A DNA stretch of 64,000 bases from Haplodiscus bocki (GCA_965655095.1 OZ296656.1:1798001-1862000), one strand, 5' to 3'; positions 1 through 64,000 are shown, counted from the stretch's first letter. Program-made: numbers and translations. The notes: generated by a model not told the origin, from the sequence alone.

Positions 1-2
1 AC

Positions 3-3000
3 ATTGACGTTAACACGTTGTTGCCGAAGGTCAAAGACCCTCTAATTGCCGGGAAGCATCACTATCCGACTGTGTCTAACGAGCATTTCTCGCCAACCAA
101 TGCAGCTTTGTTTGCACTGACTCAATCAAGCACTAACGTTCAAATTTGCGACGATTACACGGCACCCCGTTACGTTGCGAAGTATGCAGCGGGCATTGAA
201 TCTCGAGCAGCAGCCACAATTGTTGCAGGTCAGACAGAGAACAGTGTAAAGGTTCTGACAGAACCGATAGAACATGAGAAGATAGCAGGTGTTCGAGCTT
301 GTTTGAAAAATTTGCGTCAGGAAGAGAAACGACAATCAGTAAAAGGTCGCATTGTCAGTATTACTGAATGTCTTTGGTGGTGCTTACAACTTCCTTACGT
401 CTGCACAAATGTTGACTTTGTACATGTGCCTACAGTTCCCAAAGAATATCGTTCAGGAATTGTAATTGAGAAACGTTTTCACAAGTCTCCGAATTTCAGC
501 GCCACTTTCACTGATGGAATCCGTGTGCGAAAAGAATTATTGGAACTCCCAAAACTTCGACAATTTACAAAAAGTCAAACCCTCCTCCTTGCAGATGTTG
601 AAAACAGTTTCATTTCTCCTGACAAGGTAACTGTTTTTGGACTGAGGCCGCCGGAACTTTTGTTCGTATCGCAGTTAAAAGACTATTACAGCTGGTTTGT
701 GCGCTGGAAACCCAGAAGAACAAACTGCCTTAGCAATCACGAGAAGTTCTTGAAAAAAGGTTTACGTAAAAGCTGCTGGGTTGATGCACTTGGATATTTG
801 GTTAAACTGCGCCCATCTGCTGTTAACTCTTTCGTAAGTCTCTGTCAAGAAAAGTTTGGTGAAGAACGGAATCAGATCTTGAAACGCGAAATGAGGAAAC
901 ACATTGTTCCCATTCTTGAAAACAAGAACAGTTCTCAGTTCGTTGCTCATTGGAAAAACTTGTCAGAAGAAGAGGCCGTTGTTGTTTTAGCAACAGTCTA
1001 CCGAATAACCCAACAAAGTTTTTACTTCATCTGTTACTGACCGTCGGGAAACTTGACACTGAGTTGGACATCTTGAACGTCCAAACTTTCAAAGAAGCTT
1101 TCATAAAAGCGGGTATTTTGCTAAACTCAACCGTCACTGATGGCGAAGTGAAAGAAATAGCTAAGAAGTATTTGCTGGAACAGCTTCGCTTCACTCCAGG
1201 GTCATCTAAATTGATTGACACTTACTTGGTAATGGCCCATAGTGTCATATCGGAGGCACTGTTGATAAACAATCTCTTTTTTGCTGCTGCTTTACCACCT
1301 GTTCTCGACAAAAGCGTCCTGGAGGAATGCGAAGAAACAGTCACAATTCAACTGGCTATGGAAAAGTGTAAAATGATAGCTTTCCTTCAGACATGTCAGA
1401 CTGAATTACCTGCAGAGCAAACGATGATCGACGCCACTTTCAATACTCCAGTGCCTTGGAAGCCACTTTTACAGAAGAGCCCGGATCAAAGTAAAAACTC
1501 ATATTTAGAGCAACGTCAAGTTTTGGACGAACTCATTAATTCAATAGACATGTATAAACGAGGACATTGCACTTTCATAAGACATCAGATTGTTTTCGGT
1601 CCACCAGGATGCGGCAAAACTTTTGTGATGCTGAAATCTCTTGCTTACGCCTTATGTCAAGGATAGCATTGTGTGGTGACATCCATAGCAGCTGAAAGAT
1701 CTGCTGCTTTAGCTGGAAAACATCTGAATGCTTTGATACCATTTCCAGTTGAAAAATGTTGCTCTGCAGAATCACTTTCGAAGAAGGCTCTGTCCAATTT
1801 ACAACGATCTCCTATCAAAAGCCGAGTTTTACAGCACTTAGACGTAATTTTCGTTGAAGAACTTTCGATGATATCTAGCGAGCTTTGGGCAGCGACAGAT
1901 CATGTTTTGCAAGTTGTCACAGCAAATTATGTTCCTTTCGGCGGAAAACTCGTTGTCGCAACTGGTGACTTCTTTCAACTTCCTCCGCCCTCTGGATCTT
2001 ACTTGATGAGTTCCTCTTTTCCTTTAACAACCTTTGCTTTCCACAATTTGAAAAATTTTGTCCGAATGCGGAACAAGAACGGCCAGGAACTGTTATCATT
2101 GTTATCAGCAACGCCTAAAACAGATGCCAATGCAGAAAAAATTTGGAAAATTATGGAGAAAGATTGCACTTTTGTACAATCGTGGAACGACGTGCCGAAC
2201 GATAGAATTCGAATTTTTGCTACTAGACAAGCGGAACGGAAAGCAACCGAGAATAAAATCACTGAAGTTAAATGCAGCAGAGCACAATACTTTGAAAGTG
2301 CGTCCATCGACGAAATGTGCGTTTCGAGCACCGACAACTGGAGTGAGGCGTCTGCAACAGCGTCGAAGTTCCTGAACAAAAAGTGCCTTGAGCCCCAATC
2401 ACTTTTTCTATACCCCGGTGCTATTATGCGATTAACTGTCAACAAACCATCCTTATCAGCATATCAAGGTCAATTTTGCGTCCTCCTGACTTTGGATACC
2501 ATTGAAAATGGTACCCTAACAGTTGCTCTTGCTCCAGCTGGTTGCAGAAATATCCCGCCACTCTCTGTGATCAGAAACAGTTGGAGGTGTGTTGTTATTG
2601 GCAAGGAAACTGGTGTAGCCTTCCGATTAAACCATAAAACAGTGTGCAGGAGGATACAGTATCCGTTAAAGCTTTTTGTTGCGTCCACCATTCACAAGAC
2701 CATGGGCGAAACTCTGCCGATGGTGGCGACGCAAATAGTGGGGTCACGAGATTTTGCTTTGTGGCTTCCTGAGCAGTTGTATGTGGTTATGAGCAGGGTA
2801 CGGAGTTTGAACCATGTCACTTTTGTGGGCACGAAGGAGGAGAATAGAAGAGCAGTTTTAGACTTAGTCCGCAAAAAATCACAGTGGGCTGAGCTGACTA
2901 ATGAAATTCTGACAAAAAGTTCTGCGCGCGATCCCACAGTTTATCATGCCAAAGCATCGCCTTTTCCGCCATCAACTCGTGACCTACCTACCCAAAACTT

Positions 3001-3382
3001 GGGTTTCTGTTACTTGCTGCAGAGTGTCCCACAAAGTCAGCTGTTGTACATTGGCTCCACTATGTCCTTGGTGCGTCGTCTGAGGGAACACAATTCTGTG
3101 TTAGGTTCTAAGTTCACAAAAATTACAAATCGGTTGCCCTGGAAAGTTTGTGCCTATGTAACTGGGTTCAATTTAACCAATGCGTCTCATAGAGTCCGCG
3201 TATTTGAGAAAGAATGGCTGGATGCAGCATCGAACTACGTTAATCTCAAAAAGAAAAATGTATCACTCTTCACAGCCATCAATTTAGGTGAAGACATCGC
3301 AAAAACTTGGCCGCACAAAGAAGACGGTTTGAAACTTATTGTATGTAGTGGTGAACCCACTGCCTGTTTAAAGCCATGGTGA
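3..3382 (+). pseudogene. Rep-PIF1 helicase-GIY-YIG polyprotein, C-terminal part, disrupted
   Basis: Track ORFs 18-1040, 950-1666 and 1673-3382 are colinear with the intact U2 protein (RYVAKY, GPPGCGKT, GDFFQLPP, TIHKTMGETL, LYIGST). Frameshift near 985-990 and in-frame TAG at 1664-1666. Confidence 0.9.
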
Positions 3383-4206
3383 TCGCAATATCCATTCTGA
3401 CAAAACTGTTGAAACCATTTTCTGTTATGCACAATGTTTCTGCGTACGCGTTGGATCCCAACTGCTTCGACTGCATAGTGAAGCGTTGACAGAGTTCTCT
3501 TCCAATCTTTTGTATATATTTGCATCGACTGCACAGTGTTGCGAATTTCAGCATAGGACTACTGACGAAAAATTTTCGGCTCGACTGACTGCTACGGCTG
3601 TAGATTGTCGCATTTTGAAATGTCAGCTGGTATTGCCCCTTCTGTGCCCTCGATAATATGCACCAGATGAACAGTTTAGAATTTTTGTTCCTGTAGTTAG
3701 TTCAGCATTTTTGATTAGTTGAATTTTCTTGCTTTGTGTAGCTTTGAGTACGTATTAAACTTCAGTTGTGGAACATCTGCAATGAAAATATATTTTATTA
3801 ACCTTAACTTTCTACAAGTTCTGTGGACGGAAAAAACCGATTTAATAACGGTGTATTCGAATGCATTGCTCACCTTTTTTTCTATGGCCTTAAATGTTAC
3901 TGATCGACAAAGCGTGATGCGTTGAACCGTAAGATGACTGTAATTGTAACATGACATTTTTATAATTGAACTTAATGATGAAGAAGTCTTGAGAACTCTG
4001 AATAATTGATGAATTGTCATGCTTTTTTTTGAAAAACAGGTTGCTTTACTTGAAGCAGTAGCGCTATTTCATTGTATTAATTGCTTGAAACCGAAAATAC
4101 TTGCCTGTTGACTGTAAGGAACCTTAACGGAAATTGCGTTCACAGAATCTTTAAAAAAATTAAAAAGCATGGTTTTGAATACTCCAATTGTTCAGTTCTC
4201 AGGCAT

Positions 4207-5154
4207 ACGTTCGTCAGAGGTATCGTTGTAGTTATTAAGAAAAATGACAAACCCTTGCAGTTGTTTAGACCGCAGAATATCAAAAACAAGAGAGGTGCCC
4301 TCGATACCAGCTATGATCGATTAGTCATACTAGGCGAGATCAGTTCGAAAGAATGCTTTGCTGTGATTGCGGAGTCTACACAGAAAAGCTATTTTTTGTT
4401 CGGGGACACTCTGTTAACAGTAGGGTCAATTGTGGACGTCAAAGAACCTGTGTTCTCCAACTCTTGTCGCGGCAATGATCGCAGTAATCCCATTTTCCAT
4501 GTCTTTCTTCCTTTGGAAGTCGTGATTAACAATATTCCATTGTTGCCAATTCCCATAGATCTCCATTCATCAACGACAGCAATGTTTCACTTTTGCTTGC
4601 CAAACAGACCCCTCACCTTCTTACAAGCAAGTGCTGTGGCTCCAACTTGCTCAGGCTTCATGTGTGACAGACGAGAAAATCGAATTGACTCTGTATGCCC
4701 CTGTATACAGAAATCTCCTGTTTCCGCTTGGGTAATGTGCGCCCGAATTATCAGTCGTGACATCGAAAATGAAGACGAAGACTCCCTCACGGGAGAAATA
4801 TTACACAGTCTTAACCTGACAAAAATGTTTTGCAGCGAAGCTATTATTAGAACTTCATATGCATCAATCAATTCACAACAACTGCGGAATGCTGTTAACC
4901 AGGTGTCCCAATTTGTAAATGAGAATGGAGGGTGGCAGGTACGTGGATTTTACAAAACTGGATCCACAGACGAAAATCTTGCACAAAACGTACAACGTGC
5001 CCGCATTTGCGAAATTACGCCTGCCGTTGAAGTGCCTTTTAACTTGAAGTACAACATTGTGCCATGCAACGCCAATATTGGCAATGAACCCTCAGCTTTG
5101 CAGCATGCGAATGCTAACGTCGGTGCTCCTAACAATCCGAACGACGTACGATAG
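4207..5154 (+). pseudogene. ORF3 (unknown, possible OB-fold/Zn protein), start codon deleted
   Basis: Near-identical to 38101-39111 from TFVRGIV onward. About 88 bp, including the ATG (38075-38162 in U3), is missing at ctcaggca|tacgttcg. The track start at 4081 is a TTG in sequence that is upstream non-coding in other copies. Confidence 0.8.
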
Positions 5155-6199
5155 GTGATCTAGACCTACTCTTCAGAGGACCGTTCTTTCTCCACCGCGT
5201 GAACTGCTTGCAGGTTTTCAAAACCAACATCTCCTTTCGCAATCGACCGCAAGGTGGTTGCTGAAAAAAACATGCACAAAGTAACAGGTTTCGGAAAAAA
5301 AAATTAATGTTGTCCTCGTTCTTTCATACCAAAGTTTGTTCTCCTGCTTTTTTCAATCTTGAAACCTATGCTTCTATTCTCTTGTTTATGATAAAGTTTA
5401 ACTTTCCAGTACTTATCAGTACCTAAAGGTTAATTGTTGGTTTTTGTAGAACTGTGAACACTAATGTCAAATTAGTTGTTGTTGAACAATGGAAATTAGT
5501 TTGCAACTGCCGACGACTTCTCTCTGTAAACTTATGTCTTTCAGTAGCTTAGAACATTGTGCTAATTCGTGTTGCTTTTGAATGTGGATTGTTGATTCGT
5601 GTAGAAGTTGTGAACTTTTCATTTTATGCAATGAACTTCTTTCTTGTTATGTTAAACATTACTATCCGTTCATCACCGAACGTTTTGAACTTTGAAACGA
5701 TGTCTTGCTCTTTTATCGGGCTCAGTGCACTCTCTCAGTTTGTTGCTTGACGTTTGATACAGTGAACGCTTTGTAAAACAGGGAAAAGGAAAAGAAGCAG
5801 AAAGTGTTGTAATTTTCTCCAACAGAAGAATGGGAACAAACTTTTATACGAAATTTTAGAGAAGTTTTATTCTGAAGTCTATACAGGTTCATTTGCTTCA
5901 TTTAGGTTGTTTTCACAAAGTAACAGCTGGGAACCTACTGCCTACAAATTGACAACAATGGTGCGAAACTTTTTGAGAAAGTTAAAACACTTTCGCGGGT
6001 GAAATTTTGATTCGTTCGGAAAAAAATTCTGTTTTCCTTCCCAGAAACTCATCAAACTTGAATTTGTTTGTTAAAGGAACAGCTGCTTTCAAAACATAGC
6101 AAGCTAAATTTTCCTGCCGACGTTCGCTATGCGCCTGTTTAAGTGTCATAATCAAATTCTACGGCAAATTTTGATTTTTTGTGATTTTTATTTTTTTTT

Positions 6200-6819
6200 C
6201 GAAAAATTCGTCATAACCGTCATTTGTTTCGGCACTTTGGCCAAAAATTTTTTATCGTCAAAAAATTATCTTTCAAGTTATGGAGTCAATTTCACAATGG
6301 AGCCGCTCCAGAGCGCAAACTATGTACTTCAATGTGGGAGCTATGACGAAATGATCGATTTTCGGCATTTTTTTCCAACTTTGATCCGTCATACCTCCAC
6401 ACCTATGACGAGTTGGCAGAAAATTTTTCGCATGCGTATAGGTCACAGTTTATGTGCTTCACACAAAAAGTTTCGGCCAAATGCATGTGGTTACTTGCAA
6501 GGCTGTCGATTAAAAACTGCAAAAAAGGGCCAAAAAACAGAATCATCCCGTCATAATTCCTCAACCATTTTTGCTAGAATGATCTAACCCGCACCATTGT
6601 TCTTAGAATTGTAAAGTATGCCTGCATACAAAGTTTGAACCAAATCGTATGGGTGGGAGCTGATATCGCTATTTCTACACCCCCGTTTCCACAGATGTAA
6701 AACACTAACTACTAAAACGGCTCGGCAAAGGGGCCCCTCCCCCGCCTCGCAAAGGCCTGATATGGGGCAAAAACCCCTGACCACCCAGTGGAGGCAACGG
6801 TGCAATTTACTAGAGGGCG
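6200..6819 (+). repeat. Conserved ~610-bp terminal block, copy 1
   Basis: Starts TCGTCATAACCGTCAT; ends GGGCCCCTCCCCCGCCTCG...GACCACCCAGTGGAGGC...GGCG; five copies in the window. Confidence 0.9.
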
Positions 6820-7169
6820 GGATTTTTTCCATCCAACTTTCTTTTTCTGCATCAATTCTGGTGATTGGTCTGCAATTCTAAATTAAATTGTTGTTGTTAT
6901 AAACTGGAAACTGTGGTTTGTTCTTTTTTACGAATCCTTTCTCCAGGCTCAAGATTAGCTCGCACAACGCAGATTCAACTGCTTTGTGCACGGTTTGTTT
7001 CACACCGTAAATGTAGCTATGTTCTGCAAAACCTATGAAAGTTTCTTTTTTCTTTTGAAATTCGTGACAGCAGCAACGAAGGATGGCAAACGTACTTTCC
7101 GATCGACTTTTTCCCGAAGTCAGCTCACAACGGTGAAGTAACAAATTCTCCATTTTATCAGCTGCAGAA

Positions 7170-7660
7170 TTAAACTATAACTACACAGACCTACCCCTGA
7201 CCGGCTTCCATATCAATGGACGTCTTCAGTGGAGCTCCTTTCCATTCATTGAATCCAGATTTTTTGAAGAAATCATTTGTTTGCGCAATGAGATGTTCCC
7301 GAAGCATTTTTTGCTGTTTCTGGTTGCCTTTCTTTGTGCTTCAGAGGAACAAAATAGGTGTTATGTGCTATTGCAAATCAGTTTAATTTTTTTGAAACAT
7401 GAAATTGTACATTTAGGAGTTCTGTACTAGAAAAATTCAACAATAGGAAGTTCTGCGCCAAAACCTTTCATCCAATATGTAACTATAATATTCATATCTC
7501 GTCCAAAACATATATAGACCGTTTCATGCTTCCGGAAAATAACCAGATGAGAAAAAGTTACTGGCCACATTCATCATTGAATTGAGACAGTTGTTTTCAT
7601 CAAATTATCGTAAACCAAGTATTATGACAACATGATGACCAACTTGATGACGGATCAGTA
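7170..7660 (-). pseudogene. Decayed tyrosine-recombinase-like catalytic domain (type A 5' region)
   Basis: Manual minus-strand translation across stops and frameshifts: LIRHQVGHHVVIILGL (7658-7611), KHET (HET 7528-7520), LRK (7288-7280), GQ (7202-7197) with TAA nine codons later. The U6 homologue has GH...Y at the same spacing. Confidence 0.45.
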
Positions 7661-10022
7661 CTATGAAGTCGATTGAATATGTACCTTTCATTTATCAAGT
7701 CGTAAAAGTGGTATTTTCATTCTCTACATTTTCAGCTTTTGTCAACATAAAACTTGGTTAATGGAAGCACTTTTAACAATATCTGAAGGTTACGTGTACA
7801 GTTAAAACGCTGCCCCTTCACTCTTGATGTCTTTTTTGAGTGTTTCCGGTTTTAAAGACTTTTTTTCTTTTACATACTGTTCAAAAGTGGTCGCGTTTTT
7901 CACAACCACTTTTATCGGAGTTTTTCGAAAGATCATATTTGATTGGTTCTGACGCATAGATATCGGAGTTTTACACTTTTTCAAATTAACTTTGAAATGT
8001 TGTGTGAAAAAATCTTGTCGTTGTCAGAAAAAATTATCCGCGAACGAGCGATTTATGGGTGTGTTTTATTCCAAGAAGTCTTGACGAAGTTAGTTTTTGG
8101 ATAGTGAATTTTTATATCAAATCATAAATTCTTTAAGGTCAGCTCCACATTGCCAATTTCTCATCCCTCATTGGAACCCTCTGAAGTAGACAGTTTTGGT
8201 ATGTGATTCGATCGTTTGAACTCTTCATCCTGTGAATCCTGACTCACTGAAGTCTCAACTGATAATGGTCGACATCTTTTGATCGCTGTCGATAAATTGT
8301 GCTATTTGTTTCGGGTGATTTACTTTACTGACGTTTTTTTGGACGAACAATGCTGGATAATGCTTGTAGAATCGTTGACTGACTACTAAGTATTGTTCCA
8401 AAATTTCCAATTTACAAGGGGAACTCCACTGTTATCAGCGTACATGAATTGTTATTGTGTTTGATGGAGCATGAGACGCGGGAAAAATTTGAAAAGTATA
8501 CAACATAATCGTAACTTTAAAATCATCCCGATTGATGCCAAAGATGATTGCCGTTGAACGAACAGTGTCAACGGGCTCCTCAAAGCTGAGCGTGTCAATG
8601 GTTTTGCTCCGGAAGAGAAATTGTTTCCATTTATTTTTTACCCGTCTACTGCCTAGAAGCTACAAAGTGTTTACGTGCAAGTTCGCAGACTCACATTACC
8701 TATAGTTTTCTAACAAACTTGACAGTTTGTGCTTCATTTCATCGTGTTTTTACTGATATTGAAAGTTCTTCATGTTTGTGTTGCCTGTGGGTTTCGTTCT
8801 TTTTTCCATGTGTTCAACCATTCAATCGGATTTACCATTTTTGGAAGGAAATTCAGGACCGAATGATCAAAACTGAGATCATATTATCGTTAGTTTTGAC
8901 CACAAAAAATTTGTTTTCCCAACGAAACTGTTTGGATTCGCACGTGTTTTGTAGAGATGTTAGCGAAAAAACATTGCGTGTGGAAAAAAATTATTGACGA
9001 AAACTACTGCTTGAACGTTCATAGCAAACTGTGTGTTATCTTTGGCGTTGAAGTACCACGCGTCTGACTGTGCATCAACTTTGAGACGCACTTGTAAGCA
9101 AACGATTTCTCATTTTGTTCTTTAATTGTTCAAATGAAACTTTGACGAGTTAAAAGTGTAATCATGATTTTTCGCGGGGAGAAGACTGCCCCTCCTTTTT
9201 CTTGTTTCAAAGTTTCAAAAATCCAATCTCTTCTGTCCGATCATGAAATTGAATTTTTTATTTTTAGCAAGTTACATAATCGCCGTCGATATTATAGATC
9301 TAAATTTTATTGATCAACCGCTGCTGCAAGCATTTGTTTTGTCAGCTGACTCACTTGGTTCTGACAGCTTCCATAACCTCCGTTCCATGGAATGATTTTG
9401 GATGCCAGGGTTTTCTGAAGAGAGTGACAGGATTGTGAGAATCTTTCAATCATAGTTACCTAAGTTGTTAGGTTTTTGGGTTTTTTACAGGAAGATTTTT
9501 TTTCCGGAGGGAATTTTCACCTGTTGTCAGACTTCAGTCATAAACTATAGGGCGTAATTTCAGTTTGCCTGATTTAGTAGTTGGCTCTGGGAAAAACTTT
9601 ATTTTTACTCCCTTTCTTTCCTGCTCATTTTTCATGATATGTTATTTTAAGTTAACTAAAGTGATAAAGTGCGCATTTTCTCAAACAGCTTAGGGAATTC
9701 GTATAGGTCGCCTCAACACTCATGCGTTCTCAATTGATTTTTCCAACTCAACATTCTTGGCTTTTAAGAACGATTGTGATGGGCAATGTAGTCTGATCCC
9801 CTCACAATTGGGCAAAAAAAATTGGGAATTAAGCGAACTCGCCGTGTACACAATACTAATTGACGGCAATCCGTAACATCGAGATATGTTCCACTTGTAT
9901 GGGTGAACGGAAAAAAAGTTCATGCATACGATTTTTAAACACGATACAAGAGTCGCAATTAACACTAATTACAACGCCGCCTCTCCGAGTAAAAACCTGT
10001 TTGTTTTCTTTCTCTGATAATT

Positions 10023-10060
10023 GCCTTGGTTTTGCTTCGTTACCTGCGCAAAACCAAGGC
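10023..10060. other. Conserved inverted repeat GCCTTGGTTTTGC-N12-GCAAAACCAAGGC
   Basis: Perfect 13-bp arms (10023-10035, 10048-10060), ~200 bp upstream of the polyprotein ATG. Confidence 0.9.
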
Positions 10061-10256
10061 CCACATTGCATATGTTTTTCTGGATACTGATTTCCGAATT
10101 AATTAGATGCTTCCCTTAATTGAACAGTTTGAAAGCCGAGCAAAACGATGTCATTTTGTACGTTGGTTCTATAATGGCGCCAACTCTTTACAATGTATTC
10201 ACTATTAAAGATGAGTGATTGATAAACTTTTGCGCGAATTTGCTTGTGAAAGAGTA

Positions 10257-43988: not shown

Positions 43989-44026
43989 GCCTTGGTTTTG
44001 CTCCATTCCGTTCGCAAAACCAAGGC
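43989..44026. other. Conserved 13-bp inverted repeat, 12-nt spacer
   Basis: GCCTTGGTTTTGC-tccattccgttc-GCAAAACCAAGGC. Confidence 0.9.
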
Positions 44027-52343: not shown

Positions 52344-52920
52344 AAAGTCGTACTTTAGGAGAAAGCCGCTCAAAAACTTATGGATTAGTTTCGGATAATT
52401 GTTTTACTTGCTCACAAACTTCCTTGCCTTGACAGCGATACGCATCGACTGCATAGTGGTGCATTGGTGAACTTCGCTTTATGTTATGCTGCAACCGCAT
52501 CGGCTGCAGAGTGATGTACCAAGTAGCACGTGCAACAACATGAACCTTTTTGCTGGAAACGATAATGCTTCGACTGCATAGTGTTGCATTATCTATTTTG
52601 CAGTTGAGATGATTTGTTGCTAATTACTTGTATGTGTCTGTTTAATTCATTAGCTTGAGGGGATTGACTTTCACTGAACCTGATCTGATGGACTTTAATA
52701 TTCCAAGCACTAGAAACAGTCCATTTAAAAATGCGCCGTTAATTTTGGACAATAGAAATTAGGTTACTTTCAAGTTTTTTTGAAAAACAATTATAATCAT
52801 ACGTTAACTGACAAATTTTGACATTGTTGATTGAGGCACTCTTGTTACTGTATCCCCGTATTCGGGGATGATACCTGAAGCTGCAGAAACCGACGTTTTT
52901 CACAGTGCTTCCAGATCATT

Positions 52921-53794
52921 ATGGCTCATTTGATCATAACCGACTCTCTGGGCGTACAACTGGAAGGTGTGCTTGAAAGTTTGGCAGTTAAAAGTTTTCC
53001 TGGCGCCAGAGCGGCGGACCAACGTGTAACGAGTTTCCTGGAAAATTTGCGGCGCCGCTTTCAATCCATTACAATTTTCATTGGAGGGAATGGCCTTTCC
53101 AATTGGGGCCGGCGTCCAGCTGAAACTCCAGAACAGGTAAAGCTTAAGTGATGTTTCATGGGGTTACTGTTTGCAAAATCAAATTAGACGACAGTAAAAT
53201 TTGAAATGTTTTTGTGTTTTGTCAAATCCTTTATTGAAATACGTTAGTAAAAGTCTAGGAAAACGTTGTTTTCAATTCTGCGTCTTTCTACTGGTGCTTT
53301 AACTAGTGCTACGTGCAAACTATTTTTGAACCGTTACTTTGGGTTTTTAATATCTCAGCAGTACTTCATTTGTTTTCCCTTTTTTCCTGTTGTTTTATTA
53401 TTAGGTGTTCCTTGATATCTTGAACCTTGTGAGAATTGCCGAGAGAAAATGCGACAAAGTATACTGCCTGGGCTTAGTAATGCGAAGCCAACCGTGCTTC
53501 CTTGCAGTGAAAGAAATAAACCGAATGCTGCGAACATCCATTGGACACTACACTTACGTATCCGTGTCATCTAAAATGTCATCTGAAAGAAATCTTAAAG
53601 ACGGAGTGCATTTGTCTCAGCACGGCGTGACCAACATCCTGTGGATTATAAAAAGACGGATTTTAGGTAACAAATGTGTACAGCAGTACATTAGAATGTT
53701 GAAAAACAGTATTGATTCCAGTAATTTGCGCTTGATATCAACTTTCCAGCAATTGAATGTTTCTAGCTCTAAACTCTTTGGAATTTATCTATAG
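52921..53794 (+). CDS. SGNH/GDSL-type hydrolase, 2 exons (52921-53136, 53405-53794), C-terminus extended
   Basis: Same motifs and intron as U3; the U3 stop TAG is CAG here, adding 37 codons. Confidence 0.85.
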
Positions 53795-55109
53795 AAGGGT
53801 TACGTTTTTTCCATAAACTTCCATTCTAACACCAATGTTGTTTAGGACTCTCCCATCGCAAAAACCGCTACGTGCACTGGAAATGGTGAAGATCTGGCCG
53901 TGAGTTGTTCTAGGCTTCAATTGCAAGTTTCTTGAAAATGGTATTACAATCTTGGTCGTTGCACCTATGTTTCGAATACTCTTGGTAGTTTTTTCATGAT
54001 AACACAATTTAGAAATTTTATTGGTGCTACCATTAAAAACAAACAAAGGTGCTTTTTTGATTTCGAATAATCTTGGCTAATTGACGCTGCTAGGACAGTG
54101 TTTTAATTTTTTTTTCGTGTCGCTTTCGATTTGTAATTTGTTACTGATTAAATTGTAAAAGAGTTCGACCGCATGGTGGCCTCTACTTCTTTGGAGTTTT
54201 GAAAATTTTTTGTTCCATACACCTTGCATTTTGGCGTACATTAAAACATGTTTATTATTTTAAACTTTGTCTTCGTGCCTCATTCAATTTAAAGTTGGTT
54301 TGTGATGACGCTGTAAAGAGTTCAACCGCATGGTGATCTGTACGTCTTTGAAGTTTTGATGCTTCGTTGTCATTGGAACAATTTTGTGATGGTCGCCGTC
54401 CGCTATGAGTCGTCACAAGTCCTTCATGTTTTCGCTGAAATAGTGTACTCCATAGTTACATTGTTTGTTAAAAACTTTTGTTATTTTAAATTTTTGAGGG
54501 TGATCAACTAACCTTGGCCATACTCTTAGAAGGATTGTTCATATTTTTTTGAATAAAATTTTCTTTCGAAATGTTTGTTCTTGTCCGCGCAAAAAACGTT
54601 ATAGCAAACATTGTGCAGGTTTGAGCTCGTATTAAACTTCAGTTGTGGAACATCTGCAATGAAAATATAATTTATAATGCTTAACTTTCTACAAGTTTTG
54701 TGGACAAAAAAAACCGATGTAATAACGGTGTATTCGAGTGCATTGATCACCAATTTTTTTCTATTGCCTTGAGTGTTACTGATCGATAAAGCGTGATGCG
54801 TTGAACAGTAAGCTAACTGTAAATGTAACATAACATTTCTTTGAAATAAACTTAATGATAAAGAAGATTTGAGAACTCTGAATAATTGAGAAACTTGTGA
54901 TTTTTTTTGATAAACAAGTTGCTTTACTTGAAGCAATAGCGCTAATTGACTGTAATAAATGCTTCAAACCGAAATTACTTGCCTGTTGACTTCATTGAAC
55001 CTTATAGGAAAATGCGTTCACAGAATCTTTAAAAAAAGGAAAAAGCATGGTTTTGAATGTTCCAATTTTTCAGTTCTCAGGCAGCTTCAACCACGTTTGA
55101 TTTCAGACT

Positions 55110-56120
55110 ATGACAACTCAAGTGAACACTTCCCAAGTAACAGCACCAAATTTTTTGCGTCGAAGCGAAAATACGTTCGTCAGAGGTATCGTTCTAGTTA
55201 TTAAGAAATACGACAAACCTTTGCAGTTGTTTAGACCGCAAAATATCAAAAACAAGAGAGGTGCCCTCGATACCAGTTATGATCGATTAGTCATACTAGG
55301 CGAGATCAATTCAAAAGAATGCTTTGCTGTGATTGCGGAGTCTGCACAGAAAAGCTATTTTTTGTTCGGAGACACTCTGTTAACGGTAGGGTCAATTGTG
55401 GACGTAAAAGAACCTGTATTCTCGAATTCTTGTCTCGGCAATGACCGCAGTAATCCAATTTTCCATGTCTTTCTTCCTTTGGAAGTCGTGGTTAACAGTA
55501 TTCCATTGTTGCCAATTCCCATAGATCTCCACCCATCAACGACAGCAATGTTTCACTTTTGCTTGCCAAACAGACCCCTCACCTTCTTACAAGCAGGTGC
55601 TGTGGCTCCAACTTGCTCAGGCTTCATGTGTGACAGACGAGAAAAACGAATTGACTCTGTATGCCCCTGTATACAGAAATCTCCTGTTTCAGCTTGGGTA
55701 ATGTGCGCCCGAATTGTCAGTCGTGACATCGAAAATGAAGACGAAGACTCCCTCACGGGAGAAATAATACAAAGTCTTAACCTTACAAAAATGTTTTGCA
55801 GCGAAGCAATTATTAGAAGTTCATACGCATCAATCGATTCGCAACAACTGCGGAATGCTGTTAACCAGGTGTCACAATTTGTAAATGAGAATGGAGGGTG
55901 GCAGGTATGTGGATTTTACAAAAGTGGATCCACAGACGAAAATCTTGCACAAAACGTACAACGTGTCCGCATTTGCAAAATTACGCCTGCCGTTGAAGTG
56001 CCTTTTAATTTGAAATACAACATTGTGCCATGCAACGCCAATATTGGCAATGAGCCCCCAGCTTTGCAACATGCGAATGCTAACGTCGGTGCTCCTAACA
56101 ATCCGAACAACGTACGATAG
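55110..56120 (+). CDS. ORF3, conserved hypothetical 336-aa protein
   Basis: Intact frame, nearly identical to the U3 copy. Confidence 0.88.
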   Translation: MTTQVNTSQVTAPNFLRRSENTFVRGIVLVIKKYDKPLQLFRPQNIKNKRGALDTSYDRLVILGEINSKECFAVIAESAQKSYFLFGDTLLTVGSIVDVKEPVFSNSCLGNDRSNPIFHVFLPLEVVVNSIPLLPIPIDLHPSTTAMFHFCLPNRPLTFLQAGAVAPTCSGFMCDRREKRIDSVCPCIQKSPVSAWVMCARIVSRDIENEDEDSLTGEIIQSLNLTKMFCSEAIIRSSYASIDSQQLRNAVNQVSQFVNENGGWQVCGFYKSGSTDENLAQNVQRVRICKITPAVEVPFNLKYNIVPCNANIGNEPPALQHANANVGAPNNPNNVR

Positions 56121-57174
56121 CTGATCTAGACTTACTCCTCAGAGGACCGTTCTTTCTCCACCGCATCAGCTGCTTGCAGGCTTTCAAAACCAATCTCTCC
56201 TTTCGCAATCGACCGCAAGGTGGTTGCTGAAAAAAACTTGCACAAATTAACAAGTTTCGGAAAAAAAGTCAACTGATAAAGTTGTCCTCGTTCTTTCAAA
56301 CCAAAATTTGTTCTCCTCCTTTTCAATCTTGAAACCTATCGTTCAATTTTTTTGTTTATGACAAAGTTTAAATTTCCAGTACTTATCAGTACCCAAAGGT
56401 TAATTGTTGGTTTTTGTAGAACTGTAAACACTAATGTCAAAATAGTTGTTGTTGAACAATGGAAATTAGTTTGCAACTGCCGACGACTTGTCTCTGTGAA
56501 CATATGTTTTTCAGTAGCTCAGAACATTGTGGTAATTCGTGTTGCTTTTGAATGTGGATTGTTGGTTCGTGTAGAAGTTGTGAACTTTTTATCTTATGCA
56601 ATTAACTTCTTGTTATGTTAAACATTACTATCCCTTCATCACCGAACGTTGTGAACTTTGAAACAATGTCTTGCTATTCTATTGGGCTCAGTGCACACTC
56701 TCAGTTTGTTGCTTGACGTTTGATGCAGTGAACGCTTTGCAAAACAGGGAAAAGGAATAAAACTAGAAAGTGTTCTAATTTTCGCCAACAGAAGAATGGG
56801 AACAAACTTTCATACGAAATTTTAAGGAAGTTTTTTTCTGAAGTCTATACAGGTTCATTTGCTTCATTCAGGTTGTTTTCACAAAGTAAAATCTGGGATC
56901 CTACTGCCTACAAATTGACAACATTGGTGCGCAAGTTTTTTGAGAAAGTTAAAACACTTTCGAGGGTCAAATTTTGAAAGTACTCGTTTGGAAAAAAATT
57001 TTAAGTTTTCTTCCCAGAAACTCATCCAACTTGAAGTTGTTTGTTAAAAGAACGGTTGCTTTCAATGAATTGCAGGCAAAAATTCCTGCCGACGTTCGCC
57101 ATGCGCCTGTTTAAGTGTCATAATCAAATTCTGCGCCAAATTTTGATTTTTTGTTTTTTTTTATGGTTTTTTTT

Positions 57175-57790
57175 GAAAAGTTCGTCATAACCGTCATTTC
57201 TTTCGGCAAAGTGGCCGAAAATTTTTCATCTTCGGAAAATTGCCTTTCAAGTTATGGAGTCGATTTCATACTGGAGCCACTCCAGAGGGCAAACTATGCA
57301 CTTCAATGTGGGAGCTATGACGAAATGGTCGATTTTCGGCATTTTTTTCCAAATTTGATCCGTCATATCTCAACACCTATGACAAGTTCGTGGATAATTT
57401 TTTGCATGTGTGTAGCCCTTAGTTATTCTGCTTCACAGGAAAAGTTTCGGCCAAATGCATGTGGTTACTTGCAGGGCTGTCGGTAAAAAACTGCAAAATG
57501 AGGCCAAAAAACAGAATCATCCCGTCATAATTCCCCAACCATTTTTGCTAGAATGATCTAACTTGGACCATTGTTCTTAGAATTGAAAGTTATGTCCGCA
57601 TGCAAAGTTTGATCAAAATCGTATGGGTGGGAGCTGAGATCGCTAATTCCCTATACCGTTTGTGCATATTTGTTTTTTCTTATATTTTAACGCGAGGCAA
57701 AGGGGCCCCTCCCCCGCCTCGCAAAGACTAATGTGGGGCGCGATCCCCTGACCACCCAGTGGAGGCACCGGTGAAAATCACCAGGTGGCG
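57175..57790 (+). repeat. Conserved terminal block, copy 4
   Basis: Ends TCACCAGGTGGCG at 57790. Confidence 0.9.
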
Positions 57791-57952
57791 GTCACTGGAG
57801 AAGCACCTCTGAAATATGAAATATTACTCATAGTCTTTTCTTCGAACACAGTAATGAGTTTTGCAAATGCCTGTTTAATACATTGAAATTGAGCCTGTGA
57901 AATCTTCATTGAAATCGACAGGACATCGAAGACGAAGCTTGCAAAAAGTTCG

Positions 57953-58001
57953 GCCCCGTTGTTTCTCCGTGTCGCTTCGCTAATCTACGAAACAACGGGG
58001 C
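57953..58001. other. Inverted repeat GCCCCGTTGTTTC-N23-GAAACAACGGGGC
   Basis: Perfect 13-bp arms at 57953-57965 and 57989-58001. Confidence 0.85.
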
Positions 58002-58220
58002 GGGGCAATTAACAATTTGAATTTCCAAAAAAAATTTTTCAATTTAGGGCCAAATTATGATTGTTTTTCCAGAAAGTTTCAATACTTCAACCCACAAAAA
58101 AAATTAAATTTCAAAAAAACTACGGAGTAGGAAAATTTTGGGGAAAAAGTGGACAAAACAATTGCCAGATATGAATTCTACAATCAAAACTGAGTTTTTA
58201 GAAAATTTTAATTTTTTTTT

Positions 58221-58837
58221 CGAAAATTTCGTCATAACCGTCATTTCTTTCGGCAAAGTGGCCGAAAATTTTTCATCTTCGAAAACTTGCCTTTCAAGCT
58301 ATGGACTCGATTTCATACTGGAGCCACTCCAGAGGGCAAACTATGCACTTCAATGTGGGAGCTATGACGAAATGGTCGATTTTCGGCATTTTTTACCAAC
58401 TTTCATCCGTCATATCTCCACACCTATGACGAGTTGGTAGAAATTTTTTTGCAAGCATGTAGCCCTTAGTTATTCTGCTTCACACGAAAAGTTTCGGCCA
58501 AATGCATGACGTTACTTGCAGGGCTGTCGGTAAAAAACTGCAAAATGAGGCCAAAAAACAGAATCATCCCGTCATAACTCCCCAACCATTTTTGCTAGAA
58601 TGATCTAACTTGCACCATTGTTCTTAGAATTGAAAGTTATGTCCGCATGCAATGTTTGATCCCAATCGTATGGGTGGGAGCTGAGATCGCAAATTCCCTA
58701 TACCGTATGTGCGTATTTGTTATTTCCTATATTTTAACGCGAGGCAAAGGGGCCCCTCCCCCGCCTCGCGAGGACCTATGTGGGGCGCAATCCCCTGACC
58801 ACCCAGTGGAGGCGACGGTGAAAATTACCAGAAGGCG
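58221..58837 (+). repeat. Conserved terminal block, copy 5
   Basis: Ends TTACCAGAAGGCG at 58837. Confidence 0.9.
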
Positions 58838-59185
58838 GGATTTTTTGCATCCAATTTTTTTGCTGCATCATTTCTGGTGATTGGTTCTTTTTTCTAAAGG
58901 GTTGTTTTTATAAAAGGAAACTGTTGTTTTTTTATTTACGATACCTTACTCCAGGCTGAAGAATAGCTCACACGACGCGGTACAACTGATACATGGATAC
59001 ATGGACAGTTTGTCTCACACCGTAAGATTGCGTTTTTTCCGCAAAACGTATAGTTTTGTAGACTTTTTAAAAGTTGACAACAGCAGCAATGAAGGATGGC
59101 AAACATACTTTCTGGTCGATTTTTACACAAACTCAGGTCAAAACGGCGCTAATGTAACAAATTTTTAAAGTTGTCAGCTGCAGAA

Positions 59186-59690
59186 ATAACATTTAACTTC
59201 ACCCATTTACCTGTGACCGACTTACATAACAATGAACGTTTTCATTGGATAACCTTCCCATTTGTTTAATCCGGAATTTTTCAAAGAAATCATTGGCTTG
59301 CAGAATGGGTGATGTACCTGAAGCATTTCTTGGTGGTCCTCCATACCGTTTTTTGTTCTTCAGAGAAACAATATTGGTGTTGCGGGCTCGTCCACGTCAT
59401 TTGGCCTTTTTCATACATGAAAAAGTACAGTTAGGTGTTCTGTACCAGAGAAATTCATGAACAAAAAGTTCCGCGCCAAAACATTTCATCCATTATTAAC
59501 TATTTTATTCATGCACCGTTCAAAACGCATTAAATACGTTTAATGCGTCCAGAAGCAGAACAAAAGGATTAATGGTAACTAGCCATTTTCATCATTGACT
59601 TGAGACACTTGTCTCCATTGTCTCCATCAAGTCATCGTCAGCCATAGATTATGACAAGTTAAAGGCCACTTTGATGACGTATCAGTGCTG
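59186..59690 (-). pseudogene. Decayed tyrosine-recombinase-like catalytic domain (type A)
   Basis: LIRHQSGL*LVIIYG (59685-59641), H*T (59545-59537), FCK (59305-59297), GH (59218-59213) and TAT Tyr nine codons after His (59188-59186). Confidence 0.5.
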
Positions 59691-61653
59691 ATAGTAGACT
59701 AAATGTGTGTCTTTCTTTTGTCAAGTGGTGAAATTCGTGCTTTGATTTTCCTGATTTTCAGCTTTTACCAACAATAAACGTGGTTAGTGAAAGGAATCGA
59801 AACAGTTTCTGAAGGTATCATGCTCAGTTAAAACGATGCTTCTTTACTATTGATGACTTTCAAGAGTGGTTTCGATTTTAAGAATTTTTTTCTTCTACAG
59901 ACCGAACCAGAACTGTCGCGTTTCACAAACGTTTTTGCGTGAGGTTCTTGGAAGAGGCTATTCGGTCGGTTCCGACGCATACATAACGGAGTTTTACACT
60001 TATTCCAAAATAACTTTTGAATTTTGTGTAAAAAATTACTTGTTGTCAGATAAAATGATCAGCGAACGAGCATGTTATGGATACGTTTTATTCTTGTGAA
60101 GTTTTGTCGAGGTTTCTTTTTGGATATTGCGTTTTTATATCAAATCGTAAATTGTTTCACGTGAACTCGGCATCGCCAATTTCCAATCCCGCATTTGAAC
60201 CCTTTCATGTAGATACTTTTTCGTATGTGATAGAAACGTATGAACTGTTCATCCTGTAATTCCTGACTCACTGAAGTCTCAACTGATTTTGGTGAACAAT
60301 TTTTGGCTTGTGTCGATAAATTCGGCGCATTAACTTTGGTAAATTACTTTGCTAACGTTTTCCTGGGAGAAGAGTGCTGTGTAACGCTTGTCAGAATCGC
60401 TGGCTGACTACTAATACTTTTCAATAATTTCTAAAACTAAAAGGGGGACTACGCTGTTATCATCGTACATGAAATGTTGAAATAGTTAATGGCGCATTGG
60501 AGACGTGGGAAATTGAAAAGTAAACAAAATAATCGTTACTTTTAATGTATCCCCTTGGTTGCCAACGTTGACTGGCATTAGATGAACAATTTCTACAGGT
60601 TCAACAAAGTTGAGCATATTATTGGTTTTGCTTAGGAGGAGAACTTGCTTTCATTTACTTTTTAACCGTCTGCGGCCTAAACACCGGTCACGTAACATTT
60701 AGTGTTCGCCATTCGTTAGCTGGTGAGTTTGGTGTCAGTCATGCGGTAAACTGAAAACAAGGGATAATTTCTTAGACAAACAGACCGTTTCCGCTGTCAG
60801 TGCGGGAATGAAAGATTACGTAACATTCTTGTTTCACGCTTTTGAAATAAGGGTTTTATCTCTTTTCAACTGAGCAGTAAAACGCTGTAACATGATATCC
60901 TACTTTGTTCAACAGTTCAATGTCAGTTTAATTTAAGCTAATTTTTCATGTTCATTGCTTTAGATATATTTGCTGTTCTTATCGCCAACTACAGGACGGT
61001 TAAGTTTCCAGCAGTAAAAAGCAAGCTTCAGATTGATTGCCATTGTAGTCAGCTTGAAGTAAAGGCAGATAATTGTGTAGTCTGTGTCATTATAGGAAAA
61101 TTCTTCATGATTTTCGGGTGCTCATTAAAAATAACGTTCGAATATATGAAAGGCAGAATAAACTTGAGTATTTTTTTGTTTTTGGTTGTGCTGTGCTGGC
61201 AGGGAAGAAAATGATGCAATTTTGCGTGTATCTGCAAAAGTTTATTTTCGTTTTTGTTTGTGTTTGCCAATTGTCACCATATTGAGTAAATTAATGACAA
61301 AAAGTGTGTTTCTCGTGCAGTTGTGTGAATGGTCTCTGTTTCATTCCACGTCAAAAGGGGGAAGTAATTGGCTGGTACCAATTATCGCAAGTGAAAGTTT
61401 TTGGGGAATTTTGACATACGCCTCCTTCCTGTAGGAGTTTGCTGGATTTTGTTGCAGACCAAAACTTGCGACCTGAAGCCAAAGATTTTATATCGGCTTC
61501 TCTTTCTTGAAGGGTTAATTTGGAAAGTAGTTTATTGCTTCTTGTAAATGTTTAGAGACTTTCATTGTGTTTTCTATGTGCTTTGCCTGTAGGACTTTTG
61601 CTATTTGATGTCGGCACGAGTGAAGCACTATATGTAAAAGGCATCTTCCCAAA

Positions 61654-61691
61654 GCCTTGGTTTCGCTCAGAGGCCTTCGCAAAACCAAGGC
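61654..61691. other. Conserved 13-bp inverted repeat, 12-nt spacer (one mismatch)
   Basis: GCCTTGGTTTCGC-tcagaggccttc-GCAAAACCAAGGC. Confidence 0.88.
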
Positions 61692-61975
61692 GCTTCTGTT
61701 TTTCATTATTCAATTCGCAATGGAAACTGTAACCGTTATGGAAACAGTCCTTTCCTAAAAACTTCAAAAAGGTTTGAAATGCGGAAAGGAATAAATATCA
61801 CAGTCTGTATGTCGAATTTATAGCAGCCTCTGGAGCTCTATTTGTCGCAAATGGGTCCTTGGCGGCTTCAATTATCTGGGGTCTGTATTTTTTTTGTGTT
61901 TCAAATAGGTATGGTAAATTTTGACATGCTGCTTCCCTTTTTTGTGCAATCAAACCTGCAACCAAAAAGCAAAAC

Positions 61976-64000
61976 ATGAAGCGTCGCCGTTGTACTTCTT
62001 GTGGACAATTTGCTGTTGCAAGCCATGTTTGCCTGAAGGACATTGATCGAGAACTGCAATCTGATGAGCCGCTGGGCATCTTATACAAAATTCCCGACAT
62101 TTCAATCTCCGTTTCACCAGTTGCACGAAGTGAAACTCTGAACTGTCTCTCAACTTTAGGTCTAACTGATTTTTTAGTCTCTCTAGACGTTTCGATCGCA
62201 AATGACAGTATCATTTATAATTTGCGTCCGGCGCGTGTAACTGCGATTCTTGGCGATGGTAATTGCCTTTTCTCATCCTTAGCAGTTGCTCTCGGTTTGT
62301 CACAGGATTGTAGTTCAATTCTACGGAATAAAATTGTTAGCAACATGATGTTCATCAACTTCCCTCCAAACAGCTTACAAACCACAATTTACTCCGCTGA
62401 TTTTCCAAACCAATACCGTGTTTTGCTTTGTACTTCGATTCAAGAGTACCTCAGTTTGTCGAAAATGGAAGAAAATGGAGTCTTCGGAACATGCGTTGAA
62501 ATATACGCGTTTTGTCAGATTTTCCAAATGGACGTATATTTATATCATGTTCCTCTGAAATCCTGGTTGGTTTATGAATGCTCTCTGAGCACGAATCGTC
62601 GTGGAATTTTCATTCAGCAAACCTGGAATGCAAATCACTTTGAAGTAATCAGTGAGTTGGTTTCAGTCGCAAATGAAGAAAACGCTGCAGGTTCACAAAG
62701 AATTTCCTGTCTTGGTTCCAACGCAATGCATTTCTCTTCGTCAGTTTTGGGAGAGGATATTGAATCTTTCAGGTACCCAGAAAACACAACAGGGGTCCCA
62801 CCAGCGAAAAAAGCAAAACACACTGCGGATCCATCCACCTCGAAGACATGCCTTGAAACTCACGTCACACACATTCCAAGTCAGAACTCCTGTAACGCAA
62901 AGTCAGATCAAAATTTTCCGATGCTAACGTTGTCAGAAAACGCTACCAAATCTGTTCTGAGCAGAGAAATACCCAAAATCGAGGATCTGTACACTAACAC
63001 TGCTACGGTTTCACACAGTGATGCAACAATTGAACAAACGACAGATGGTAATTCTAAGTCTGCTGACGGAGAGTTTTGCGGCAAATGCTTGCGACAATCC
63101 ACGCTGCAATATCCGTTAAAGCTTACTAAGACAGAAAAGTCAGATTTTATAAACAGAATGTTTGGTAACCGAATCAAGGACGCTTTTCCCATATTATGCA
63201 ATCAATGTCTACTTTACTGTACTTCCGAACGCATCGAGTGGAGTCACGCATGGCCATCTGTTTTTTTCACGCTTTTGAGTGATGAAAAAATGCCCAAGGA
63301 GCAGCAGTTGAATGTTTTAACGTTGTTATCTTGGGAACTGAGACAGCAATGGATGGGATGCTTGGAAAAATTTACTCCATGTGTCCAACAGTTTCTCAAT
63401 GGAAAAGAAATCAATGGGAAATGTGTCGTTGACGGAACCGCTCGTTTGCATTATTTCCAGAAACTGATCAAAACTCTTCAACAAGAACAAATAGCAGTAG
63501 CTTTGGATAAAGAACCTTACCCGAACGTTCGGTGCCCATTTGGTTGCTGGTGTTTCATTGAAGAATCCGGTTTAATCAATGCTAAACACTTTTTGAATCT
63601 ATTCGACCCAGCTTTTACGTCTTTTGGAGCTTCTAGTCATTTGCATCTTAGAGGAATTAGGTCAGATTTCTTGGTTCCAACGTCATCGTTGCGGAAGTTT
63701 TTAATTGCAACAACTGTGCGTGTAGACAAAGTAGAAGGATTGGTTGTTCACGCTTGCCTTATGCACTCAAAAGGGTCGTCTGTGCAATACCTTCATCCTC
63801 CATCAAATCCTGTCCTGTCAATAACTGCGTTAATTCACGATGAGCGTTTGAGTATGGTGGCACCAACAATTTCGTGGATAACAAATATTAAAGCAAACTT
63901 CGCCAGTCATACCTACCAGTTATTGAAAAGTGTTGGTTCTTATAGTGGAATGAGTACAGTTCAGTTGCGGCGGAGAACGCGTTGGGACATCACCAGCGAT
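61976..64000 (+). CDS. Rep-helicase polyprotein, N-terminal ~675 codons (runs off window; not in ORF track)
   Basis: MKRRRCTSCGQF...LGDGNCLF...NHFEV...AWPSVFF...PYPNVRCPFGCW...TRWDITSD; start and end are in the same frame. Confidence 0.88.
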   Translation, partial: MKRRRCTSCGQFAVASHVCLKDIDRELQSDEPLGILYKIPDISISVSPVARSETLNCLSTLGLTDFLVSLDVSIANDSIIYNLRPARVTAILGDGNCLFSSLAVALGLSQDCSSILRNKIVSNMMFINFPPNSLQTTIYSADFPNQYRVLLCTSIQEYLSLSKMEENGVFGTCVEIYAFCQIFQMDVYLYHVPLKSWLVYECSLSTNRRGIFIQQTWNANHFEVISELVSVANEENAAGSQRISCLGSNAMHFSSSVLGEDIESFRYPENTTGVPPAKKAKHTADPSTSKTCLETHVTHIPSQNSCNAKSDQNFPMLTLSENATKSVLSREIPKIEDLYTNTATVSHSDATIEQTTDGNSKSADGEFCGKCLRQSTLQYPLKLTKTEKSDFINRMFGNRIKDAFPILCNQCLLYCTSERIEWSHAWPSVFFTLLSDEKMPKEQQLNVLTLLSWELRQQWMGCLEKFTPCVQQFLNGKEINGKCVVDGTARLHYFQKLIKTLQQEQIAVALDKEPYPNVRCPFGCWCFIEESGLINAKHFLNLFDPAFTSFGASSHLHLRGIRSDFLVPTSSLRKFLIATTVRVDKVEGLVVHACLMHSKGSSVQYLHPPSNPVLSITALIHDERLSMVAPTISWITNIKANFASHTYQLLKSVGSYSGMSTVQLRRRTRWDITSD

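Follow-up and report, generated by a model that had tools for sequence, protein, structure and literature searches.

What kind of element fills 64,000 nucleotides (nt) of Haplodiscus bocki DNA (GCA_965655095.1 OZ296656.1:1798001-1862000) with head-to-tail copies, and how did these copies come to lie end to end? Our analysis of this whole stretch, referred to here as the window, indicates that it is probably an array in which a Helitron-like rolling-circle transposon is present in both autonomous and non-autonomous copies, and that new copies, we infer, insert beside resident ones. Every base of the window belongs to one of six units on the same (+) strand (A, B, C, D, x and E). Direct repeats at a spacing of approximately 17.0 kb were present on one strand throughout, and self-BLASTN aligned positions 23064-40746 with positions 40098-57790 (91% identity over 17.8 kb). 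The repeats, the self-alignment and the contiguity of the six units bear out the initial annotation of the locus, which described same-orientation units with no DNA between them. Units B (6789..23683), C (23684..40715) and D (40716..57759) measure 16,895, 17,032 and 17,044 nt; only the 3' part of unit A (1..6788) and the 5' part of unit E (58807..64000) lie in the window, and a non-autonomous mini-unit of 1,047 nt, x (57760..58806), is located between D and E. Unit B is the most divergent (its DNA is approximately 66% identical to every other unit), and D is 85-97% identical to C. The constant gene set and length that had been claimed stand for B, C and D at the lengths given; they do not extend to unit A, which has no SGNH gene, and mini-unit x had been overlooked. 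There were zero N runs, no short tandem repeats and no matches to Rfam families in the window.

The units meet at sharp borders. The 3' end is a conserved block, located in unit C at 40657..40715 (+; GGGGCCCCTCCCCCGCCTCG ... GGGG-loop-CCC ... GACCACCCAG), which also terminates at 6788, 23683, 57759 and 58806; alignment of the five window junctions showed that it is kept even in the divergent unit B, the types diverging beyond ...GGCG. The 5' end is a conserved block of 31 nt, located in unit D at 40716..40746 (+; TGGAGGCRMCGG...AGDDGGCG), which also begins at 6789, 23684, 57760 and 58807. Together with five junctions from other loci (ten in total), an invariant core, CCAGTGGAGGC, was common to 10/10 junctions, and the full 17-mer GACCACCCAGTGGAGGC was exact in 8/10, with one variant copy each in the related contigs L007 and L008. 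At least four different 5' types were observed downstream of the same 3' end. Across the ten junctions, variation in the 31 nt after ...CCCAG is correlated with the downstream unit (Mantel rho 0.58, p = 0.002), whereas no such relation to the upstream unit was seen (rho -0.06, p = 0.57). On these comparisons, the units run 5'-TGGAGGC ... GACCACCCAG-3'. Because copies abut at one exact nucleotide, the sequences suggest that new copies insert at the ends of old ones. The arrays combine three peculiarities: every unit is bounded by the end of another unit, both ends are conserved across subfamilies of approximately 54% protein identity, and the joined ends recreate a palindrome (CCAC-CCA-GTGG).

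Two other placements of the border were considered. A boundary at the motif TCGTCATAACCGTCAT was rejected: the following 633 nt (3' region X) match the type of the preceding unit and are therefore assigned to its 3' end. A boundary after ...GGCG was moved to after ...CCCAG, as the 31 nt between them co-vary with the downstream unit and the array edge stops there. In this single array edge (L008), the element stops at ...ATGACCCCCGAG and the border reads ...CCGAG/GTAAT, followed by 2.8 kb unlike any element sequence fetched. In the more distant L001 family, conservation stops at ...CCACCTAG and the 3' end is CTAG. None of the related contigs examined showed a left array edge at which the 5' end was clean.

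The termini had been described as non-Helitron, which is right for one end only. The 3' end looks Helitron-like: CCAG, or CTAG in L001 (CYAG), lies approximately 10 nt past a GC-rich GGGG-loop-CCCC palindrome, the stem of which is different in B-type ends, and a GC-rich palindrome followed some 10 nt on by C(T/C)AG is the classical Helitron 3' layout. At the 5' end the description holds, the 31-nt block beginning with TG and not with TC. Terminal inverted repeats were not detected: comparison of the first 60 nt with the last 300 nt gave inverted matches of 6-8 nt at most, a length also reached in shuffled sequence. The direct-repeat motif TCGTCATAACCGTCAT (CGTCAT-AAC-CGTCAT; 40141..40156, +) marks the start of 3' region X. 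Exact copies are also present at 6208-6223, 23111-23126, 57182-57197 and 58229-58244, one per junction region (five exact copies vs. 0.04 expected by chance), approximately 580 nt before each 3' end and with a T-run just ahead. The motif was also found in L002, L007 and L008, and CATAACGGTCATT-like copies were present in the L001 short units.

The only intact polyprotein in the window is that of unit B (10215..18356, +; ATG at 10257; 2713 aa as listed). Pfam domains in this open reading frame (ORF) are OTU (114-213), Helitron_like_N (1377-1482), PIF1 (2094-2253) and GIY-YIG (2592-2666), the HUH Rep spanning residues ~1377-1650. The catalytic motifs are in place (DGNCLF/HFE in OTU; FVTYTC, PHIHA and the two-tyrosine YVAKYA in Rep; Walker A GAPGTGKT; GYCYV..YNG) and are kept in relatives, with the Rep order of motif I, HUH and two-tyrosine motif preserved across the clade. 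Scores for Helitron_like_N (27.1 bits in B, cut-off 28.9; 31.8-35.3 bits in relatives) and OTU (22.4 bits in B, cut-off 23.3; 36.7 bits in the relative P0113) fall just under the cut-off in B and above it in relatives. PIF1, fused downstream of Rep in the same ORF, scored 45.4 bits (cut-off 25.9), and its best matches among solved structures were cellular PIF1 helicases (E = 1e-8). GIY-YIG scored 31.7-36.4 bits (cut-off 22.6), the closest solved structure being SLX1 (4xlg, E = 1e-5). Domains and motifs agree with the initial description of rolling-circle elements with an unusual constant gene set.

Two further genes follow the polyprotein. The first has two exons separated by a GT-AG phase-0 intron of approximately 250 nt (unit B, 19265..20021, +; exon 1 19265-19480, exon 2 19731-20021) and contains SGNH blocks I, II, III and V (ITDSLG, FPGA, GGNGL and DGVHLS). 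Taken singly, the exons are below the length that Pfam can detect, and an intronless homologue in a related contig (L004:24129-24713; 30% identical to exon 2) matched Lipase_GDSL_2 (E = 2.7e-4, under the curated cut-off). AlphaFold (AF2) was run on this homologue with the window exons included in the alignment; the model (pLDDT 77.6, pTM 0.80) matched PAF-acetylhydrolase Ib (PAF-AH Ib; E = 1.6e-7, TM 0.64) as well as sialate O-acetylesterases, TesA and the esterase domain of the ZfL2-1 retrotransposon ORF1. Through this homologue, the model confirms an SGNH hydrolase fold for the small two-exon gene; the intron-containing SGNH gene of the initial annotation holds on exons, motifs and homologue fold alike. 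The other gene, ORF3 (unit B, 21313..22344, +; ATG at 21331), is present in units A, B, C and D (336-343 aa), carries an invariant C-x4-C-x10-C-x-C motif and has homologues only in assembly contigs in the protein search. No match was found in Pfam or PDB sequence searches, nor did profile comparison against an ORF of a distant relative give anything significant. A tyrosine-recombinase relic had also been proposed. It did not survive: units B and C have no conserved coding sequence outside the three genes, and no recombinase Pfam match at E up to 1 was obtained in 25 non-genic ORFs, a search that did not cover heavily decayed fragments read through stops. The only matches in these ORFs were weak and unrelated (DUF6526, E 0.031; Flu_M2, E 0.11).

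Next, we analysed the placement of the polyprotein among known rolling-circle elements. A word-indexed protein search returned 14 clusters of the same architecture (39-65% identity) and, after a large gap, Helentron-type proteins of Astyanax (P0016) and Clytia (P0019) (E = 1e-5 to 3e-10). Exhaustive HMMER searching found 3,652 relatives, 335 of them (clusters at 50% identity) below E = 1e-30; the best 150 of the 3,652 align along the whole 1,191-aa Rep-helicase core at 26-45% identity. Every long relative sampled had a C-terminal GIY-YIG domain and one also had OTU. A tree was built from 134 Rep-helicase cores of the clade and four HLE2 (Helentron-type) proteins. The stem between the clade and HLE2 measured 1.7 substitutions per site (support 0.97), and the internal depth of the clade was 3.2, compared to 2.4 between the two most distant HLE2 proteins sampled. 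The earlier suggestion that the Rep-helicase lies outside described Helentrons is upheld to the extent that it is not nested among these four proteins. The GIY-YIG tail, already recognised in the window, proved to be clade-wide: it was present in 115/131 clade database proteins (the remaining 16 stop at most 120 residues past the helicase) and in 0/4 HLE2 proteins. Full-text searches found no description of the clade, and no Helitron-like element with GIY-YIG except one Sphagnum HLE2 family. By sequence, the clade is a large, deep and diverse branch, apparently undescribed, that the tree sets apart from HLE2.

The closest named relatives are HLE2/Helentron elements, with which the window elements share the fused HUH Rep and PIF1-type helicase, the upstream OTU and a C-terminal endonuclease; their Rep is collinear with that of HLE2 from the HUH motif through the tyrosine motif. 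Head-to-tail arrays have reportedly been seen for some Helentron derivatives. The endonuclease is of a different kind, APE in HLE2/Helentron and an SLX1-type GIY-YIG here: APE (Exo_endo_phos, PF03372) was detected in P0016 and P0017 but neither in the window protein nor in P0001-P0014. Identity to HLE2 is 23-26% and confined to the helicase, the stem in the tree is long, the SGNH gene and ORF3 are added, and the short asymmetric terminal inverted repeats of HLE2 are lacking. DUF6570 (PF20209) has been treated as an HLE2 marker (PMC11417382); it gave no match at E <= 0.01 in unit B and was absent from the precomputed lists for P0001-P0014, while it was present in P0016-P0019. HelenSM92 of Sphagnum, an HLE family reported to have GIY-YIG besides Rep-helicase, has been described as HLE2, with short terminal inverted repeats and TT target sites, and its GIY-YIG was read as a capture by one family (HELIANO paper, PMC11417382). 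Compared by description, GIY-YIG is clade-wide in our elements, the terminal inverted repeats are absent, and no TT target site was seen, the single array edge reading ...CCGAG/GTAAT.

Canonical Helitrons (HLE1, Helraiser) resemble the window elements in the rolling-circle enzyme layout, the absence of terminal inverted repeats, the GC-rich palindromes approximately 10 nt before a 3' CYAG and the non-autonomous copies with common ends; a composite D+x unit would also be consistent with bypass of a 3' end. The ends of HLE1 are 5'-TC and 3'-CTRR, with a hairpin 10-12 nt ahead of the latter, against 5'-TGGAGGC and 3'-CCAG in the window elements (3'-CTAG in L001); the window polyprotein is far larger and includes OTU and GIY-YIG, and no A/T target site was seen. 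Helraiser (7lcc) was matched at the helicase P-loop only (E = 0.003), more weakly than cellular PIF1. The "third clade" Helitrons of Paramecium have ORFs of 9-10 kb, fall outside HLE1 and HLE2, are site-specific with fixed orientation and are accompanied by non-autonomous derivatives; they target telomeric repeats at chromosome ends, and the paper names neither GIY-YIG nor OTU (PMC13085455). The window elements are similar, by description only, in their very large ORFs, fixed orientation, apparently site-specific location and accompanying derivatives. Replitrons and IS91 have an HUH transposase without a fused helicase, while the helicase of the window elements is fused in the same ORF. The Rep of adeno-associated virus (AAV) and the IS91 enzyme are HUH proteins that nick a chromosomal site mimicking their own origin or terminus, and AAV integrates as head-to-tail concatemers. 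These are functional analogies only; the families are unrelated (the AAV helicase is of a different class and IS91 has none).

The same stacking was observed in related contigs of four other public assemblies (L001, L002, L003, L007 and L008). L007 harbours three successive full units; its B/C pair is 96% identical to that of the window and is followed by a B-like unit instead of D. In L008, a full unit and an x-like mini-unit follow the end of another unit, and beyond them lies non-element DNA; the 17.3-kb scaffold L002 includes both junctions of a single unit with a C-like 5' half and a D-like 3' end. L001 and L003 lie 150 kb apart on one 656-kb contig; each has ORF3 upstream of a full unit and short units of 2.1 or 4.9 kb, with the same 3' block, downstream of it. 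Non-autonomous units measure 1.0, 2.1 and 4.9 kb. The 3' block is common to x and to the short units of L001, L003 and L008, and x has the 5' block as well (it consists of the conserved 31-nt 5' end, a unique stretch of approximately 390 nt and the 633-nt 3' region X). Mini-unit x was located behind D-type ends three times independently (in the window, L002 and L008), as expected either of a non-autonomous partner that recurs or of a composite unit that moved as a whole when a 3' end was bypassed. Upstream of L001 there are a reverse-transcriptase fragment, Sec39-like ORFs and a CAP-Gly exon. Since non-element DNA flanks L001 and several arrays exist, the arrays are islands within ordinary eukaryotic DNA. 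The intron, the flanking genes and the contig sizes mark the host as a eukaryote. "Dedicated arrays" had been proposed, and stacking was indeed seen in most related contigs examined; the arrays nevertheless lie in ordinary DNA, several of them on one 656-kb contig.

Units stacked side by side are far from identical. Between B and C, protein identity is 55-66%, the non-synonymous divergence (dN) is 0.26-0.40 and synonymous sites (dS) are saturated; no alignment is possible between the 3.4-kb 5' leaders of B-type units and those of C-type units. With B approximately 54% identical in protein to both C and D and dS saturated, the claim of several diverged subfamilies stacked head to tail is well founded. 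Unit C is closer to copies in other assemblies (95.5-96% identical in L002 and L007) than to its neighbour D (91%), and 165 proteins at >=90% identity fall into the C-type cluster. Units would then represent separate lineages and not local duplicates. The C vs. D comparison gave dN/dS ratios of 0.30 (polyprotein/Rep) and 0.10 (ORF3), values that show purifying selection; the two units diverged under selection, as active elements would.

Insertion at resident termini could proceed as follows. Rep would nick at the junction, where the joined-end palindrome CCAC-CCA-GTGG resembles the hairpin origin of a rolling-circle replicon, and would become tyrosine-linked to the DNA; the PIF1 helicase would unwind one strand, and the conserved 3' signal would terminate the reaction. 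The resident 3' terminus would be the preferred target, so that any subfamily, and non-autonomous parasites too, could be joined exactly there, giving mixed head-to-tail arrays. The Helentron APE domain has been proposed to cut the second strand or a branched intermediate, and GIY-YIG may replace it in this role. Unequal crossing-over would then add, remove and hybridise units. Several results weigh against insertion beside resident copies. No insertion event was caught: neither an empty/filled site pair nor a circular form nor a solo insertion with its empty site was found. Unequal crossing-over at the conserved block could produce equally sharp junctions, and signs of it are present (the C/D similarity, the L002 hybrid and the L007 B/C pair). 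The 3' hairpins fold no better than shuffled sequence, and 5/15 predicted pairs co-vary. Only unit B is intact in the window. Finally, the AF2 model of ORF3 was poor (pLDDT 52), and its top Foldseek matches, OB-fold proteins of the RPA, CST and SSB type, reached E 0.045 or worse, none significant. ORF3, a zinc-motif protein, may bind single-stranded DNA, which is a weak lead rather than a result.

The alternative that survives best, unlikely as we consider it, is that a few insertions came to be neighbours by chance and the arrays then grew mainly through unequal crossing-over or segmental duplication, the junctions being recombination break points within the end block. The adjacent units C and D (91% identical overall, 95-97% in genes) agree with this, as do the single L002 unit that is C-like in its 5' half and D-like at its 3' end, the L007 B/C pair that is 96% identical to the window and then continues with a different unit, and the resemblance of the window A/B junction to the L007 C/B' junction. 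Because of the L002 and L007 comparisons, the sequences suggest that unequal exchange between units does occur. As the main source of the arrays it is at odds with neighbours with unalignable 5' leaders, protein identity of at most 54% and saturated dS, with C vs. D dN/dS ratios of 0.1-0.3 rather than ~1, and with the four or more 5' types behind one 3' end. Moreover, several separate loci and four other assemblies have arrays of their own, and every array combines distant families with short derivatives.

An integrated concatemer of an episomal or virus-like replicon, generated by rolling-circle replication and not by transposition, is very improbable. The junction does recreate a palindrome resembling a single origin, several relatives are on unit-sized contigs (12-20 kb), and SGNH esterases are also found in some viruses. 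Concatemer units, however, should be near-identical, and the divergence between neighbours is 9-46%; a capsid-like gene was not found, no match was obtained in the viral contig collection, the unit-sized contigs lack terminal overlap, and the flanks are ordinary eukaryotic sequence. Long ORFs, purifying selection and constant gene order might also suit a tandem cluster of host genes or domesticated elements kept by selection, an idea with next to no chance given hundreds of copies on many contigs, copies with stops and frameshifts, short derivatives that have only the ends in common, and transposase-type proteins.

Insertion of Helitron-like elements beside resident copies is the reading that we retain. 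A more ambitious version of it, which we put forward tentatively and regard as possible but doubtful, is that the elements represent a further major clade of eukaryotic rolling-circle transposons beside HLE1, HLE2 and the Paramecium clade, with an SLX1-type GIY-YIG, an origin-like junction (...CCAG/TGG...) and site-specific integration at resident termini, forming self-made "safe-haven" arrays of mixed subfamilies and parasites. To call them categorically new would overstate the case, given that both the core machinery and the 3' end resemble those of Helitrons.

Of the remaining units of the window, all on the + strand, A, C and D show decay. Unit C has a polyprotein at ~27271-35328 that is interrupted by in-frame stops (27397 and 33790) and whose Walker A is degraded (GSGKN); its SGNH exons are at 35906-36121 and 36380-36658, and its ORF3 is at 38101-39111. 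In unit D, the polyprotein (44288-52343) is frameshifted near 51875, the SGNH exons are located at 52921-53136 and from 53405 onwards (stop codon lost), and ORF3 is at 55110-56120. Unit A ends in a 3' region X and has at least two lesions besides the loss of SGNH: the C-terminal part of its polyprotein (3-3382) includes a frameshift and a stop, and ORF3 homology (4204-5151) has lost its start. Approximately 2 kb are deleted between the two (3383-4204), with loss of the entire SGNH gene and of ~27 codons at the start of ORF3; no in-frame ATG is present near the remaining start. In unit E, the polyprotein starts at an ATG at 61976 and runs past the window end; the leader is B-like (72-85% identity) but the Rep is C-like, and E is therefore a mosaic. 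A palindrome with 12-bp arms (CCTTGGTTTTGC-N12-GCAAAACCAAGG) is located approximately 200-320 nt upstream of the polyprotein ATG (26973..27008, +, in unit C), one per full unit, and also at 10024-10059, 43990-44025 and 61655-61690. The arms are kept between units that are 66% identical, while the 12-nt spacer is variable, and the palindrome may be a promoter or a protein-binding site. A 166-aa antisense ORF (11564-12064, minus strand) inside the unit B polyprotein gene has no counterpart in C or D and is therefore probably a chance ORF.

Additional observations were made in the related contigs. Just 3' of the polyprotein in two more distant elements there is a second family of small genes (L004:19628-20260 and L005:23304-23864), distinct from the window SGNH gene; the L004 and L005 proteins are 27% identical (E = 3e-14) and contain SGNH-like motifs (AASSL, WHDVLSNS and DDLHLH) with no Pfam match. 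Tandem repeats, not seen in the window units, are present inside relatives (L003:20285-21493 and 25181-26365; L004:18498-19101 and 21289-21847) with periods of approximately 360, 51 and 185 nt. In L005, an internal polyprotein fragment of 2.4 kb (19381-21815), 71-74% identical to L005:11591-14460 and approximately 1 kb past the intact gene, does not look like a clean unit but like a copy that was truncated or nested. A degenerate 3' block (…CCCATCCCCCGCCGTGCAAAGG…) was found at L001:9840-10040, approximately 100 nt before the next polyprotein start, which is preceded by a splice-acceptor-like ...ttacag; as this unit is almost without a 5' leader, it may rely for transcription on the unit that precedes it. 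Upstream of the L001 array, L006:2656-9295 is a 6.6-kb run of same-strand ORFs with no obvious introns and a weak Sec39/NBAS-like match, which may be a retro-copy or a captured gene beside the array; the same flank, which includes L006:10001-10300, also has a strong CAP-Gly exon and a reverse-transcriptase fragment.

Target choice and the role of accessory nucleases are poorly understood in Helitron-like elements, and this clade offers a natural case for both: the junction is defined within a few nucleotides, the apparent target is the element's own end, GIY-YIG stands in place of the Helentron APE, and the intact unit B is available for biochemistry. Standard repeat annotation may miss the clade, and self-stacking arrays are relevant to genome assembly. 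Self-stacking would also show how transposons can limit the damage to their host.

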